Assembly: GCA_004431415.1 (NCBI GenBank)
Contig: QPMI01000452.1
Span: forward strand, 62,001-126,000
Source: Cyanophora paradoxa CCMP329
Lineage: Eukaryota; Plantae; Glaucophyta
DNA: 64,000 nt
Direction of reading: 5' to 3'
Shown in pieces: positions 11,457-19,134 of the stretch. A program made the translations under genes and the position numbers. Every line of letters starts with the position of its first letter. The stretch's first letter is position 1. The notes under the pieces are model-generated. The model was given only the letters and a program-made list of their open reading frames with translations. It was not told where the DNA came from and did not search any database.

Positions 11457-13226
11457 TCACGGAGTCACACTGAGATGCTGCTTGAGAGCGAGGGGGTCGT
11501 GCGGCTTGGGCCCCCTGGTAGGCCTAGGGGCCGGGGAGCGCCCGGCCCGGAGGAAGTCAGCGCACGCAGCGGCCCACGACGCCAGGTGCTCGGCCGCCCC
11601 GTCCTGCGCGCGGAAAAAAAAGGCATAGTCAGAAAGGGTCCTGCGCGGGCTCGAGCCCGCGGCCGGCGGCCCACCTCGAGGGACTTGATCCAGCCCGTGA
11701 CGATCTCGACCATCGCCGCGAAGAGGCCGAGGGAGCTGCGGGGGTACACGGCGCTTGCAATTGTTCGCCGGGGTACCGTCGATCCGAGTGAAGGGGTACG
11801 CACAGCACGGCGTAGAAGAAGAAGAAAGTCCGGCCCGGATCCGAAGCAGGCACGATGTCTCCCAAGCCTGCGCGGCGAAGAGGGGTCGGATCGCCTTAGG
11901 GCTTCTGGATGGGATGAGCGGGGGTACGGGCCGATCGTGGTGAGGGTACTGAAGCCCCAGTAGAGCGATGTGCCATAATCCCACCTACCCCCGCAAATTA
12001 GGGAGGTCGGGCTTCGGGGGAACCACGACCCGTACCCCTCTATTCGGCCCATGATGGCCGTACCCCCGAGCCAGACGGCGAGCAGGCCTGGAATGGACGC
12101 GAGTCAGGGGTGGAGCCGAAAACGCGGACGGGCGGGGGCGGGGCACGCCCTGTAGGACGGCGAGGAACTTCACCAACTTGCCGTGCTCCGGGTCCGGCTC
12201 GGAGGCCTGCTCCCGGCCCGGCCGGGGGGCTCAGCGGGGCGCGCGCCGGCGTGCGAGGCGCGCGCCTGCTCTCTCGAGGTCGCCTTCGTGCCCACCCGGT
12301 CCCCCGAGGGCTGGAGAACCGGCTCCATCCCCCGCCCCGCGGCCGCGGCGGCGGGCCCTGGGCGCTCGCGAGCCTCTGCGGCCCTTGGGGGCAGCAGCAG
12401 CCGGGCGTTCAGCGCGCACAGGGGCGCCAGGAACAGGGCCGCCACCCTGCCCGAGGGGGTTCGCGGCCGCGACGTTCAAGGCGGAGGGGCTACGGATTTC
12501 TCGCCTGGGGATCAGGGTAGCGTACATCAGCAGCGCGAAGAGGCCCCAGAGGACGGTGAACGCCCTACCCCCCGAGTTCTGGGGGGAGTAGTTGCCTGCG
12601 CGCGGCCGGCTTCGGGATCCCGCGCGCGCGAGAACGGCGTACCCCTCACCGTAGCCGATGCCGGAGCCGAGGGTGGCGGTGAAGAAGGAGCCCCCGAGGA
12701 GGGACCACTCGGAGGGGGTACCGCCCGAATCCAGGGCAGCCCTGAGGTCGGCCGCCCTCGAGAGCTCCCGCGCGAAGCGGACGAGCGCCGACAGCTGAGC
12801 TGCAGGGGGGGACCGCGGCCGCGGGCTCGTCAGAGGCAGAGGGGCGGGCGGGTTGCGCGTGCGGGCCGTGGCCTGATCATGATCATTATATATGATGGTG
12901 CGGGCTGCGCGCGGGCACCGTCGGTGAGGTTGAGGCTGCGGAGCTGGTCGCGGGCGCGCAACACGGCGGCAGCGTTCGCGCTGACGACGGGCGCCTCGGC
13001 CGCGCTGATGATGGCCCCGCCGACCACCGTCACCCCGAGCACCTGCCGTCGCGATCGGCGCCGGCCGGAGCCGGTGCGACGTCGGCGTCGGGGCCGGCCC
13101 GGGGGGCGCGCGCGGCGGAGGGGCTGCAAATCGAAAGGAATCGCTCGCACGTACCAGCGCGACGGGGACAAGGATCTTGAACGTTGCGACGAGCGCAGCG
13201 TTCTTCGACGCCGCGCTCGCGGCCAT
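11457..13226 (-). CDS. Two-pore-domain (K2P/TPK-type) potassium channel
   Basis: Pore 1 is WSLLGGSFFTATLGSGIGYG|NYSPQNSGGRAFTVLW and pore 2 is WDYGTSLYWGFSTLTTIG|LGDIVPASDPGRTFFFFY, each with flanking TM helices. The last exon is approximate. Confidence 0.9.
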
Positions 13227-13728
13227 CTAGCTATAGGTCTGCGTACGCGACTCGGCAGCCGGCCACAGCTGAGCTGCTAATACGCCTGCTATCGAAGGCG
13301 CCCCGCGCCGCCGTCGCCGCCGATCTATCCGATCCGATGTTATCCACTGGTACCACGCACGCGCGTCGACGTCCCTAGAGCTCGTGTTCGGTCGCCCAGC
13401 GACGCCAGTCGTCGGCGGGCTAAGGACGTCTGCGTTCATGCATTCCGCGCAAGCGCTGAGGGCCCAAACGGTGACCGGAATTGGCCTGCTCCAGTTCAAA
13501 CTTGCACAGCGCGCGCTGGCTCGCAGGGAGCAGATGCTACGATTCCCTACGAAGCCTAGCGGCTCTGATGGGATCTGTGGCCGGTGCAAGCCTCGGCCGC
13601 GGAACCCTTGATCGGCCGGTTCGAGGCCCGGAGCCCGGGCTGGGGTATACGCACTCCTGGTTGCCGCCGGTTCCGCCACCGAATCCGGGGCTTCTGGGCT
13701 CGTACGGCCGGCGACGAGCTGCGCCGGA

Positions 13729-16700
13729 ATGATGGAGGCTCCGGAGCGAGGGCCGCCGCACGTGCGCGTCGTCTGTGAGGGAAACGTCGTCTTAGCGGCT
13801 TGCAGTGCAACGATCGCCCATTGCGAAACGCTCAAAAGTTGCCTTCTTCCGGACACCTCAGGATCAAGAGACACACGTGAGCATGCTTGCATCGCCCCGC
13901 ACGGCCTTCGCGGTCCTTACGCGCTCGCCGCTCGCGCCCTTTGGACCGCGCAGCCATCGAGGCGCCTGGAAGCTTCGAATTCCAACTTCCATTGATATCA
14001 AGCTCAACGTTCAGCCGGCTCTCGGAATTCTGCAGTGCTCTCTCCCTCGACCAAGCGGTCGACGCCCTGCGCGTCCTGGACAGTGACGAGCTATGGCAGC
14101 TCCTGCACGTGCGCGTTCATTCGCACTTCTTGATGGATTTGAACTCTTGGCGGCGCTGTAACGCCATGTCGCGGGGCGCAGGCCGCGAATTTCTTGGACG
14201 CGAAATCCCTCTACCAGGAAGCAGGGCTCGTCGTGCGGGACCGCATCCGCGCCTCTATGGAGTCGAGAATGCTCGGCTTCCAACGCCCTGAAGCTCTCCA
14301 GCGGGAAATGATGACGTCGACGGGAGTCCCGCACTCGATCGGGAGCCAGGACTTCGAGAGGGTGCGCATACGCGTGCCTAGGCCTCTCTTTTCCTGCGCG
14401 GCGATCGCGGGGCGCCGACGGGCTCGAGCAGCTGCTGGCGTTCTTCGAAGAGCTGGATCTCCTCGCGCGGGACGGGTTCCCGCGCGACCGCGTGCAGAGG
14501 CTGACGCCGAACGTGCTCTACACGGTCGCCTACAACCTCGCCGCGCGGCCCGGCGAGGAGGGCAAGCGGAACAGGTCCGCACGCTCTGTCTGTCCGCGCC
14601 GGGCGCACGCCCCTCGCGCCCTCGCCGAGCCCCGCGCAGCCTCATCCTGTACCGCCTGTACCGCTTCCTCTGCGAGTCGCTCGTGAAACGACGCATCCGC
14701 GCGCGCCTGCAGGAATGGCCTGCGTGCGCCCCGGCCGCCCTTTCGCCGCGGTCCGCCCCCGGCCCGGCCGCCGACGCCCCCGTCCCGCAGGCTGTGGGAG
14801 AAAGAGGCGCGCGCCGTGTTCGACCGCTACTGCGACCGGTACGACGCGCGGTTCCTCGAGGGTGCGGCGTCGATCCCCGGCCCGCCCCTTTGCGCCGCCC
14901 TCGCTCAGTTCTACCCCCTCCAGACGTCCTCGGGCTCCACGTACCCAGCGGCGCCCTCTCCCTCGACGACTTCGTCGAGGGCTGGCATGTGCGCCCCTGT
15001 ACCCCCGCCCCTCCAGCCCTTCTTCCTCATGCGCATCTGATACCCCCGCAGATTGCGCGGGAGTACTCCCGCATCGCCTCGCGCGTCTTCTTCTACCTGG
15101 TGCCCTTTTACCTCACTGCACCCGTCCCCCCCTCGCCCTTCGAACGCGGTACCCCCCGCAGGAGCGCTTCCACATTCCGCGGGAGAAGGAGCGTCCCCTG
15201 CAGCTCGTCGGTGTGGTCCCCCCGCCTCTTCAACGCCCCGGCGCCCCTGAGCGGCCGGGCGCCCCGCAGCGCGGCAGGCGTTCGCGGAGCACGCGTACGA
15301 GCCCTCGGCCCGCAAGCTCGCCGAGCGGTACCCCTCCCCGCCCCCGCGGCCCGCGCGCAGACCGGCGCGCCCGCTGACGGGGCCGCCCCGGCAGGCTGGC
15401 CGCCTGCTTCATGGACGAGGCCTGCGGCCGCCGGAACCCGCCCCGCGTCGACGCCGCCGTCCGCAGCACCCGCCAGGCCCGGCCCCGCCCCCCGCCTCCC
15501 GTCCCCGGCTTCCCCGGGCGCCTGGAGGTGCGAGCCGGGGTGCAGGCGGTGCTGGAGATGACTGAGCAGGACCCCGAGTGGCGGCGGTACACGGGGCCGG
15601 CCGAGGGCGGGCCCCTCTCCACGTGCTTTCCGCTCCCATTCCCCCCGCCCCGGCCCCCGCCCCCGCCGGCCCGGCCTCACCCGTCGCCCCGGCAGCTTCG
15701 GGTCGTACGAGGAGGCGTACCACGGGCTCTTCCTGGAGGCCCTCGTCGACGCCCTCTGCGACGCCTGGCCCAGGGCGAGCGCACCCCCGCCACCGCCCCG
15801 CCCCTCGCCCGCTCACCGGCGCTGCAGGTGGCCGCCAAGCCGCAGGCGGCCGCCGGCCTCGCCGAGAAGTACGTCCTCCCCCGCGCCCACGCCGCCGTCG
15901 CCGCCCAGGTCCGGGTGCGCGCACCCGTGCCCCCCTCCCCGTCCCCCCCTCCGCCCGCCCGCCCCCGCCCGGGTTCGATCCGGGGGCTGGCCCCCGCCGC
16001 AGGGCATGTTTATGGCGCTTCACGCGCGGCGGCCGGCGCTGGCGGCGGCAGCGGCTGCGGCGGCGGCTCCCGACGCCAGCGACGAGGCCGCCGCCGCGCT
16101 CGCCGCCCTCGTCGCCTCCCTCCGCCAGGCGCTCCTCCTCCTCGCGTACCCCCTCCGCCCCCTCCGCCCCTCCGCCCCAGCCGGCGCCCCCGCCGCCCCC
16201 GCCGCCCCGCGCAGGCGCCGCCCCGGCGCCCCCGCCAACGCTGCCGGAGGACCAGGAGGGGTCGGACAGCGACGGGGGGGCCCGGGGCCGGCCCGCCGGG
16301 CCCCGCGGCGGGCGGCGGGACGCCGGCGGGCCCCGTCGGCGATCGAGCTGCACTCGGACGAGGAAGACTACGGGAGGACGACGAGGTCGTGAGGGACGAC
16401 CCGCCCGCCTCGCCCGCCTCGGCCCCCGCGCCCGGCCCCGCGACCGCTGCCCGCGGCCCTCCTGCTCCGAGCCCCTCGACCGCGTACCCCTCGCCGTCCT
16501 CGAGCCGTGCGGCCCGGGCGCCTGCCCCGCCCCCGCCCCGTCTGACCGGCGGCCCCGGGGCGCAGCTGCGGGCACGAGTACTGCCTCCCCTGCGCGCTGG
16601 TCTGCGAGCGGCGCCGCTGCTGCTTCGCCTGCGCGTGCCCCATCCTGCGCGTCCGCACCTGCAGCACCGACCCCCCCGCCGCCTCCGGCTCCGGCTCCGG

Positions 16701-17294
16701 CTCCGGCGGGGGCGGGGGCCGCGGGGCAAAGAAGCGACGCCTCGAGGGGCCCCCAGACGCCCGCCCCGACGACGCGCCACCCCGCCAGCTCCCCCGAACG
16801 CGCCACCCGCCACCCGTACCCCTCGCCCGCGCCTCCGCCCCACCCTTCCAAGTCGGCGCCCCGTCTTCCCCGTCCCCCCCGTACCCCCCCGTTCCGTCTC
16901 GCCAGGTCTTCACCTCCGTACCACGGCGCGCCCCCTCCCCCGCGCCGCTGCACCCCGCCCCTTCATCAGAATTCGTCGAATCCGCCGAGCCCGCCTTTCC
17001 CCCCCTCCCGTTCGACGAGCAGTACCCCGGAGCCCCCCCGGCTCCGGCGGAGTCCTCGTCGGCCCCGGCGCCGCCGGCCGCGGCCGGGGCGGGGGCCGCG
17101 CCTGCGGAGGCGCCCTCGCCCCGCCGGCGGGCTCTCGCCCCGCGGCGCGCCGTGGTCGTGGACCTGCAGGAGGACGCGCCGAGCGACGGCGAGCGCTGAC
17201 CGCGACGCCCGCGCCCCAGCCCCTGCCCCCGCCTTCGGATTTATTCCCCTCCCCCTCCCCTCCGCCCCTCCCCCACAAACAGCCGGGCGGCTAG
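13729..17294 (+). CDS. SKP1-like domain fused to cullin N-terminal repeats, followed by a low-complexity tail
   Basis: SKP1 part: CETLKSCL, FQLPLISSSTFSRLSEFC, LDSDELWQLLH|AANFLDAKSLYQEAGLVVRDRIR. Cullin part: LYTVAYNLA...SLILYRLY, SRVFFYL|ERFHIPREKERPLQLVGV|AFAEHAY, YEEAYHGLFL, AEKYVLP. The 3' exons are approximate. Confidence 0.8.
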
Positions 17295-17383
17295 GATTCT
17301 GTAGCTAGCGTGTCGCCGAGAGTCGTCGGGCCTTGCTTTTTCAAGCATGCAATGTGAGCGTGTTTCCGAACACTCACGGGCAC

Positions 17384-17584
17384 TCAGCTCGCGCGCGCCG
17401 GGGAGCGGGGCCCCGCGCTCGCCTGCGCCTGCGCCTGCGCCTGCGCCTGCGCCTGCGGCTGCGGCTGCGGCTGCTCCCTCGAGCTCGGGGCAGGGGCCGC
17501 CTCGCCGGCGCCGAAGCCGAAGGCGGCGCGCCTGCGGGCGACCTCCCGCTCCGTCCGCTCGAAAAGATCTTGCCAGGAAAACGC

Positions 17585-17617
<33 letters not shown>

Positions 17618-19134
17618 CGCCTCCGCCGCCGCCGCCGCCGCCGCGGCAGCGACTGCCTTGGGCGCGGCAGCGACTGCCTTGGGCGCCTCCTTCTTCGCAG
17701 GGGCCGGGGCCGGGGCCGGGGCGGGGGCGGGGGCCGGGGCCGGCTCGGGCTCCTCCTCGGCGGGCCTCTGGAAAGACTCCAGCGCGCTGTGGAACTTCTC
17801 CTGGAGGCCGCCGCCGATGCTCAGGAGGCCGCCGGCGATCCCCTGGAGGGCCCCGGCGAGGGCCTGTCCGGGCTCCTCCTGGGCGCCGTGGCCCGCGGCG
17901 CCGTGCTTCGCGGCGCGGGCCTCCCGCGCCTCGTGCAGCTTCGCCACAAGCCCGTCCACGATGTGCTGCCAGCCCTCCGGCGTCGGGTGCACCATCCGCT
18001 TCGGCACCCGCCTTCCCGCCCCGCGTGAGCGGGAGAGGTGTGGGGAGGGATGAGGAGGGGGGGTACGGGCGGGCGCACTTGAGCTCGCCGAGGTCGTTGA
18101 CGTGCCAGCCCACGTCGAAGTCCTCCTCAGCGACGTACCCCTGGCTCTCCAGCTCCGCCCTCTTCTCCAGGATGTCCCGGGGCACCTGCAGGCCGGCCCG
18201 CGCCACCGGCCGCAGGCTCGGCGCATCGGCCACCAGCCTGCGCGGCGCGTCGGCGAGGCGGGGCCGCCGGGGCGGGGGCGAGGGGTACGCAGACTGCTGG
18301 GCGGTCTTGAGGGCGAGCTTCTGGTCCGTGGAGGCAAGGGCGCGGCACACGACTTCGTCCTGCATTTTCGGGAACATGTAGTAGTACCCTGTGAGTCCGC
18401 CCGCCAGCGCGTAGCTGATGGCCCCTGCGCCGCGAACGGCTCGGCGGCGGCAGCGGCGACGGCGCAAGCGCGGCGCCGCGCACTCGCTCGGGGCGTGGCA
18501 ATGCTGTTGATGCGCTCGGCAACTGCACGCCGACGCGTCGGCGGGCGGCGGGAAGGCGCGGCGCTGCGGGGCGGGGCGCCTACCGGACTTGGGCCCGAAG
18601 TTGACGAGGCCCTCAACGACGCTGTAGGAGCCGAACCACGGGACAACGGTCGCCGCCGCGATTCTCATGACCGCGTTCGTCATGAAGTTCGGTATCGTCG
18701 GGTCCGCCGACTCCTTGAACGGCGGCGGGGGCGGCGGGGGCGGCGGCGGCGGCGGGAGGCCCTGCTCGCGCGCTTGTTGCTGCGGACGCGCGAGCGGCGT
18801 GAGTTCGGACTCTAGAAGAAAGATGCCTCGAAGCGCTTGCTCACTTCCAGTGCCGCCTGCTGCAGCGACTGCACGGTCTGGTCGGCGGCCGAGAAGAACC
18901 TGAGGCGCGCGGTCAGCTAGCCTGGCGAGTGAGGGCGCGGAGTGCGGTCGAATCGCGCTCGCGCTGCCCTGCGCGCGCCTCCGGGATTGGCAGCGGCAAA
19001 CCGGCGCACCATGGCAGAGCGATCTCCCAGCCGACTCGCGAAGCCTCCTTTATCGCCACCTCGGGCTCATCGAAGACCGGCTCGGGCGGCGGCGGCTTCG
19101 GCTCCTCCTTCGCGGCCTGCCTCCTCCCGAACAT
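17384..19134 (-). CDS. Hypothetical membrane-associated protein with a Pro/Ala-rich C-terminal tail
   Basis: MFGRRQAAKEEPKPPPP..., hydrophobic segments (AAATVVPWFGSYSVV, AISYALAGGLTGYYYMFP), PA and QA repeats, GT-AG introns. No family recognised. Confidence 0.6.

Follow-up and report, generated by a model that had tools for sequence, protein, structure and literature searches.

A 64,000-nucleotide stretch of the genome of the glaucophyte Cyanophora paradoxa CCMP329 (contig QPMI01000452.1, positions 62,001 to 126,000; hereafter, the window) contains a multi-exon gene that starts at position 13729. A preliminary description, made from the DNA letters only, had presented the span 13729-16145 as a fusion of SKP1 with the N-terminal part of a cullin that was unable to ubiquitinate. 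The gene was read over positions 13000-17000 of the + strand, and the ATG at 13729 was taken as the start of the traced exon chain. The data show a real, expressed gene. It is most likely a lineage-restricted gene of about 15 exons that encodes a protein of about 845 amino acids, annotated as 808 amino acids because of insertion/deletion (indel) errors in the assembly. Its product resembles SKP1 weakly and probably contains the first cullin repeat.

Contigs of four public sequencing runs of the same organism were aligned over positions 13400-17400. The contigs of three runs from two studies (X1, X2 and X4) were spliced and represented RNA, and those of the fourth run (X8) were colinear and represented DNA. 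All 13 introns traced between exons 1 and 14 were found spliced in contigs of the three RNA runs, and the joined coding sequence, built by a script and checked for frame and stop codons, was stop-free over 513 codons, up to nucleotide 16148. The earlier statement that the junctions keep frame was thus borne out, and the exon at 14182-14361, described as shared by the SKP1 end and the segment leading into the cullin repeat, was recovered exactly in the RNA contigs. Twelve of the introns, before and around the remaining one, were of the GT-AG type and 59-88 nucleotides long. The remaining intron, at 15775-15827, was a GC-AG intron with the donor GCGAGC, which was confirmed by spliced contigs in the three RNA runs. 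The assignment of this intron 12 as GC-AG, the end of exon 11 at 15622 and the end of exon 13 at 15914 are corrections of the boundaries given previously. Single RNA contigs covered both halves of the proposed fusion (13656-16153 in X1 and 13663-16169 in X2). Therefore, the SKP1-like and cullin-like halves are encoded by one mRNA, as had been proposed, and no splitting of the transcripts between them was found.

Protein searches were performed with single exons and later with a database protein, P0001 (808 amino acids; EukProt tig00020704_g13158.t1), as the query. This protein was found with exon 3 (60 amino acids; 100% identity at residues 102-161), and its residues 1-513 were identical to the traced translation.

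The start codon at 13729 was retained, whereas the 3' limit at 16145 was not: the RNA contigs ran unspliced straight through this position, and the gene extends over a RING finger to the stop codon 17197-17199. Compared with the assembly, the RNA contained one extra base behind each of four positions, 16148 (C), 16280 (C), 16371 (G) and 16435 (C). These four single-nucleotide differences are probably homopolymer indel errors of the genome assembly. The last three insertions linked protein-like frames, leading from a Ser/Asp-rich stretch to an acidic stretch ('IELHSDEEDY...') and from there to the start of a RING finger. Past the intron at 16507-16565, which the RNA confirmed, the RING frame entered 'CGHEYC..C' and continued to the stop codon. 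P0001 reaches the RING finger through an intron at 16261-16366 that was not shown by the RNA. The assembly indels forced the gene model to use this intron, and residues about 514-578 of P0001 are probably mistranslated. Another predicted intron, 16146-16214, was rejected, since the RNA reads through it and its splicing would miss the RING frame.

The connection between exon 14 and the RING frame was examined with regard to a possible merge of two gene models, namely, a POZ/cullin-like gene ending near 16390 and a separate downstream RING gene. No listed RNA contig bridged positions 16170-16221 (the contigs break between 16169 and 16222), and joining exon 14 to the RING frame needs one further, unobserved single-nucleotide difference within this interval; with this difference, the coding sequence comprises 2535 nucleotides, or 845 codons. 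The dependence of the annotated model on the intron 16261-16366 would also fit a merge. However, the + strand lacks any ATG from 16013 to 16600, and therefore the RING frame cannot start independently. Moreover, the RNA depth in X1 and X2 never fell to zero over 16003-16883, and the region is a C-rich repeat, in which short-read contigs break and the assembly has indels. A merge of two genes was considered quite improbable, and the RING finger probably belongs to the same chain as the SKP1-like and cullin-like parts.

The RING finger has the spacing C-x4-C-x14-C-x-H-x2-C-x2-C-x9-C-x2-C, i.e., eight Cys/His ligands in cross-brace spacing, and is of the C3HC4 type. When it was compared with the sequences in the PDB, all nine matches at expectation values (E) up to 10 were RING ligases, the best being Hakai (E = 0.004). 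The AlphaFold2 model of the RING finger had a mean predicted local distance difference test (pLDDT) score of 68.7, and a Foldseek search with this model gave no meaningful match in the PDB. RING fingers are characteristic of ubiquitin ligases, in which they recruit the E2. The RING finger found here may be active in E2 binding and ubiquitin transfer. The acidic stretch 'IELHSDEEDY...EDDEVV' (16330-16435 in the RNA-corrected frame) lies directly upstream of the RING finger and resembles a putative SUMO-interaction-type motif consisting of a hydrophobic core plus acidic residues.

The SKP1-like region was studied with a profile of seven SKP1 genes from giant-virus contigs, all of which were verified with Pfam. 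Residues 59-114 of P0001 aligned to SKP1 columns 56-131 (hhalign; P = 7e-5, probability 63%); the fold of this segment was not given by AlphaFold2 (pLDDT 42). In hmmsearch, the profile scored P0001 at 13.2 bits, a value that none of 5000 shuffled sequences equalled (best shuffle, 10.5). The SKP1-like motifs were located at residues 59-77 and 91-113, and the score of the 'PLPNV...' segment by itself was equalled by 19 of the 5000 shuffles. Among 42 natural and reversed controls, P0001 was the top non-member for the SKP1 profile and for the cullin profile described below alike. The feature neighbours of residues 1-520 included BTB and Skp1_POZ clusters at 0.85-0.86, which is a lead only. Pfam scans performed exon by exon and PDB sequence searches with exons 3 and 4 gave no match, the exons being too short. 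It was also found that the AANYLDIK helix of a reference SKP1 lies outside both Pfam Skp1 models. A sub-profile of the C-terminal, F-box-binding part of SKP1 gave zero alignment with residues 108-190, in agreement with the earlier observation that the F-box-clamping helices are absent. A caution applies to these comparisons: the reference SKP1 proteins were chosen by the same motif that P0001 resembles, and the original hypothesis also came from that motif. The similarity to SKP1 appears to be weak but non-random, though below curated thresholds.

The best Pfam match of P0001 was Cullin (PF00888), with E = 0.025 and 13.8 bits for the whole protein; with residues 160-350, the values were E = 0.0019 and 17.5 bits, over profile positions 15-133 of 620. 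As an independent test, a cullin profile was prepared from ten intact giant-virus cullins, which were fetched via the IVRIMK.RK motif and were all verified with Pfam as having Cullin and Cullin_Nedd8 domains. Residues 274-344 of P0001 aligned to cullin positions 93-163 (hhalign, P = 0.0012). With a hidden Markov model of the N-terminal 330 cullin residues, residues 273-343 scored 16.2 bits over positions 91-161 and formed the strongest cullin-like part; no shuffle out of 5000 equalled the score of P0001, and the best one reached 3.5 bits. The segment 'LYTVAYNL' was colinear with the 'YT..Y' H2 helix of cullins, with a score equalled by 29 of 5000 shuffles. The protein probably contains the first cullin repeat, with recognisable equivalents of H2 and H4-H6. 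No Cullin_Nedd8 (PF10557) match was found in P0001, and nothing matched past position 142 of the Pfam Cullin profile. By these profile searches, the catalytic C-terminal half of cullins is absent, as previously described. The EF-hand-like insert that had been noted in this region was not confirmed: no EF-hand family matched at E up to 10 in Pfam searches with exons 6 and 7 and with residues 160-350.

Similarities to SKP1 and cullin that are real, combined with the lack of the cullin C-terminal and Nedd8 domains, are what would be expected of a decoy, i.e., a preformed SKP1-cullin N-terminal module that is unable to ubiquitinate and serves as a sink for parts of the SKP1-cullin-F-box (SCF) ligase or for substrate receptors. 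A decoy would also agree with the unbridged link to the RING finger and with the fact that, when only the four observed insertions are applied, the frame stops near 16390. However, the inference of a decoy rested on a gene end at 16145 and the lack of a catalytic module, and this premise is removed by the RING finger. The latter is encoded further downstream on the + strand, in a stretch that the RNA covers without interruption. It lacks a separate ATG, is connected to the upstream acidic stretch by three RNA-supported insertions and is also present in the database gene model. In addition, because the F-box-binding helices are missing from the SKP1-like part, a sink for F-box proteins is not possible. 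The decoy explanation was therefore regarded as improbable.

Apart from the gap at 16170-16221 and the additional nucleotide that it requires, a number of results speak against a SKP1-like/cullin-like protein with its own RING finger. P0001 had no match to Pfam Skp1_POZ (PF03931), Skp1 (PF01466) or BTB at E up to 10, and the Cullin score of 17.5 bits did not reach the Pfam gathering cut-off of 33.2; in the comparisons given above, the SKP1-like and cullin repeat 1-like motifs of the preliminary description matched better than chance. The match of the RING finger to Pfam zf-RING_5 was likewise weak (E = 0.07; 13.5 bits versus a cut-off of 27.9), and its first Cys pair is spaced by 4 residues, not 2. 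Residues 345-520 were matched by 350 of 5000 shuffles in their score against the cullin profile. The phmmer search against solved structures found neither cullin nor SKP1, and its top match for residues 262-347 was a plant nitrite reductase (E = 0.013). The AlphaFold2 model of residues 1-520, obtained without an alignment, had a pLDDT of 42.5 and was unusable. Finally, no relatives were found, and conservation gave no support.

The search for relatives covered several collections. In the representative library, the exon 3 query gave no relative beyond P0001, and a word index searched with P0001 residues 1-470 returned P0001 itself only. Word searches with the open reading frame 14194-15558 (regions 1-302 and 1-56) gave none, with a length window shorter than the true protein. 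There was no relative among the metagenome and viral contigs and no paralogue in the 64-kb window.

These results raise the question of whether the RING finger is attached to an unrelated helical domain made up of the 500 N-terminal residues, the resemblance to SKP1 and cullin being a chance match of short helical motifs. Such an explanation would account for the position of every domain match under its curated threshold, for the lack of cullin and SKP1 among the PDB sequence matches, for a nitrite reductase match of similar strength in part of the same region, for the empty feature search with the cullin-like part, which gave no usable match, and for the lack of homologues that show conservation. 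It does not readily account for the finding that the Pfam and giant-virus cullin profiles choose the same colinear N-terminal positions with 16-17.5 bits, while 5000 shuffles reached at most 6.4 bits. SKP1, cullin repeat 1 and RING, moreover, belong to one functional system and occur in the matching order, with the SKP1-like part immediately before the cullin-like part; the BTB and Skp1_POZ clusters among the feature neighbours point the same way, as a lead only. The nitrite reductase match collapsed when a family profile was used: with a profile built from 54 cyanobacterial NirA-like proteins, the score was 5.6 bits over 31 residues, compared with 16.2 bits for the cullin profile, and the resemblance was rejected as chance. 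Taken with these points, an unrelated N-terminal domain seems rather unlikely.

The segment behind the nitrite reductase match, GLHVPSGALSLDD at 14926-14990 (P0001 residues 262-285), resembles the 'GLHIPVGR..a.D' motif of ferredoxin-nitrite reductases. Its score against the NirA profile was slightly above those of 5000 shuffles; it lies within an insert relative to cullins, and the likeness is probably due to chance.

Table 1. Features of the gene (positions in the window)
Feature	Position	Strand	Basis or content
5' untranslated region	13656..13728	+	RNA contig starts at 13656, 13663, 13675
Exon 1, residues 1-50	13729..13876	+	Start codon; predicted first strands and helix of POZ-like domain
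Exon 2, residues 50-101	13954..14108	+	Contains SKP1-like 'LP..S....L.EFC' segment
Exon 3, residues 102-161	14182..14361	+	AANFLDAK helix (SKP1 hallmark AANYLDIK) and linker toward cullin-like part
SKP1-aligned coding span, residues 59-114	13980..14220	+	hhalign to SKP1 columns 56-131; intron 2 inside
Exons 4-11, residues 162-410	14432..15622	+	Junctions in RNA contigs; frame checked
Exons 4-7	14432-14574, 14640-14723, 14791-14861, 14924-14988	+	RNA contigs
Exons 8-11	15052-15099, 15162-15210, 15270-15327, 15395-15622	+	RNA contigs
Pfam Cullin match coding span, residues 181-348	14489..15437	+	Profile positions 15-142 of 620
Exon 12, residues 410-436	15696..15774	+	Followed by GC-AG intron 15775-15827
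Exon 13, residues 437-465	15828..15914	+	RNA contigs, frame check
Exon 14	16003..16506	+	Ala-rich helix, Pro-rich linker, acidic stretch, first RING half
RING finger, P0001 residues 579-620	16448..16632	+	Split by intron 16507-16565
Last exon	16566..17199	+	Second RING half, Pro/Ala/Ser-rich tail, stop codon 17197-17199

The surroundings of the gene and the viral reference sequences provided further observations. The G+C content of the window (1-64000) ranges from 65% to 79% over roughly the first 30 kb and from 51% to 58% over the remainder. A convergent open frame of 480 amino acids, which contains a long poly-Gly run and gave no Pfam match, is located at 17241-18683 on the - strand; it ends about 40 nucleotides from the stop codon of the fusion gene, and the 3' ends of the two genes may overlap. 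Of two contigs named for the giant-virus bin GVMAG-M-3300009182-30, one encodes a canonical SKP1 (L003:1378-1905) and the other a complete cullin that includes a Nedd8 domain (L018:1873-4035), and intact cullins were present on ten giant-virus contigs in all. In four viral contigs of pandoravirus size (L007, L008, L013 and L014; 1.8-2.5 Mb), the SKP1 frame is lost after 'TFNIK' and 'NDFT.EEE' resumes downstream, which looks like an intron within the viral SKP1 gene.

Considering the evidence as a whole, a self-contained RING-type ubiquitin ligase is preferred to an inactive decoy, with somewhat better than even chances. The protein would consist of a POZ domain of the SKP1 type that lacks the C-terminal helices for F-box binding; a helical stretch with homology to cullin repeat 1 but lacking the C-terminal, RBX1-binding and Nedd8 part of cullins; Ala/Pro-rich and acidic linkers; its own C3HC4-type RING finger; and a Pro-rich tail. 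In such a protein, the RING finger would recruit an E2, the fused SKP1-like/cullin-like module would serve as a scaffold or a self-association arm, and the ligase would operate without RBX1 and without neddylation control. The POZ and cullin-like parts may be in contact in the manner of SKP1 and CUL1. A more elaborate form of this model, to which a low probability was assigned, is a natural single-chain mini-SCF, in which the SKP1-like part and cullin repeat 1 would be locked together in one polypeptide, or paired head-to-tail between chains, and wired directly to the RING finger. If this were true, it would be a cullin-type ligase independent of RBX1, neddylation and CAND1 exchange. Another possibility is that SKP1-F-box complexes free in the cell could be captured by the cullin-like surface and presented to the protein's own RING finger.

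Among known systems, the protein resembles in its parts the core of SCF ligases, in which SKP1 sits on the first repeat of CUL1. It has a putative POZ domain with the AAN(Y/F)LD.K helix and a cullin repeat 1-like region with the 'YT..YN' H2 and the 'YL.R' H4/H5 region; in SCF, it is through these surfaces that SKP1 and CUL1 contact one another. Unlike in SCF, both parts are joined in one polypeptide, the F-box-binding helices are absent, no cullin repeat 2 or 3, C-terminal domain or Nedd8 site is recognisable, and the protein's own RING finger would replace RBX1. Helices H2 and H5 of CUL1 reportedly have an adaptor-binding role in the SKP1-CUL1 complex, as described by Zheng and colleagues in 2002. 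For CUL3, H2 and H5 of cullin repeat 1 were shown to form the adaptor-binding surface (PMC3597819).

The BTB adaptors of CUL3 (BTB-BACK-Kelch proteins, SPOP) are similar in that a POZ-fold domain, putative in the present protein, is followed by a helical extension, and BTB clusters were among the feature neighbours. In contrast to them, the present protein has no Pfam BTB or BACK match and no Kelch or MATH domain, and its helical region matches cullin and not BACK. CUL9/CUL7 and APC2-APC11 resemble it in combining a cullin-derived scaffold with extra catalytic or adaptor domains; for example, CUL9 is a single polypeptide with both a cullin and an RBR ligase domain (PMC11257990). However, these proteins retain the cullin C-terminal domain and bind RBX1 or APC11, whereas the present protein has only the N-terminal repeat-like part and a plain RING finger. 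With simple C3HC4 RING ligases, of which Hakai, RNF123, BIRC7, TRIM31 and CBL gave the best sequence matches, it shares the 'CGH.YC..C' core and the cross-brace arrangement of eight zinc ligands, and it differs from them in its C-x4-C first Cys pair and in its N-terminal architecture. Fusions of Skp1 have also been engineered, such as Skp1-TIR1 in fission yeast (PMC8229956). They are comparable in that SCF parts are covalently joined and the ligase is pre-assembled, but they are man-made and join SKP1 to an F-box protein. A natural SKP1-cullin fusion was not found in a literature search.

In cullin-RING ligases, the adaptor (SKP1, Elongin C or a BTB protein), the scaffold (cullin) and the RING subunit (RBX1) are separate proteins, and their assembly is controlled by neddylation and CAND1. 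To our knowledge, these ligases have always been described as multi-subunit. A natural fusion of adaptor-like, scaffold-like and RING parts, if true, would indicate that the cullin-RING architecture can collapse into a single chain, and it would provide a compact natural template for minimal ligases. Its origin in a glaucophyte would be a data point on the early diversification of the ubiquitin system in Archaeplastida.

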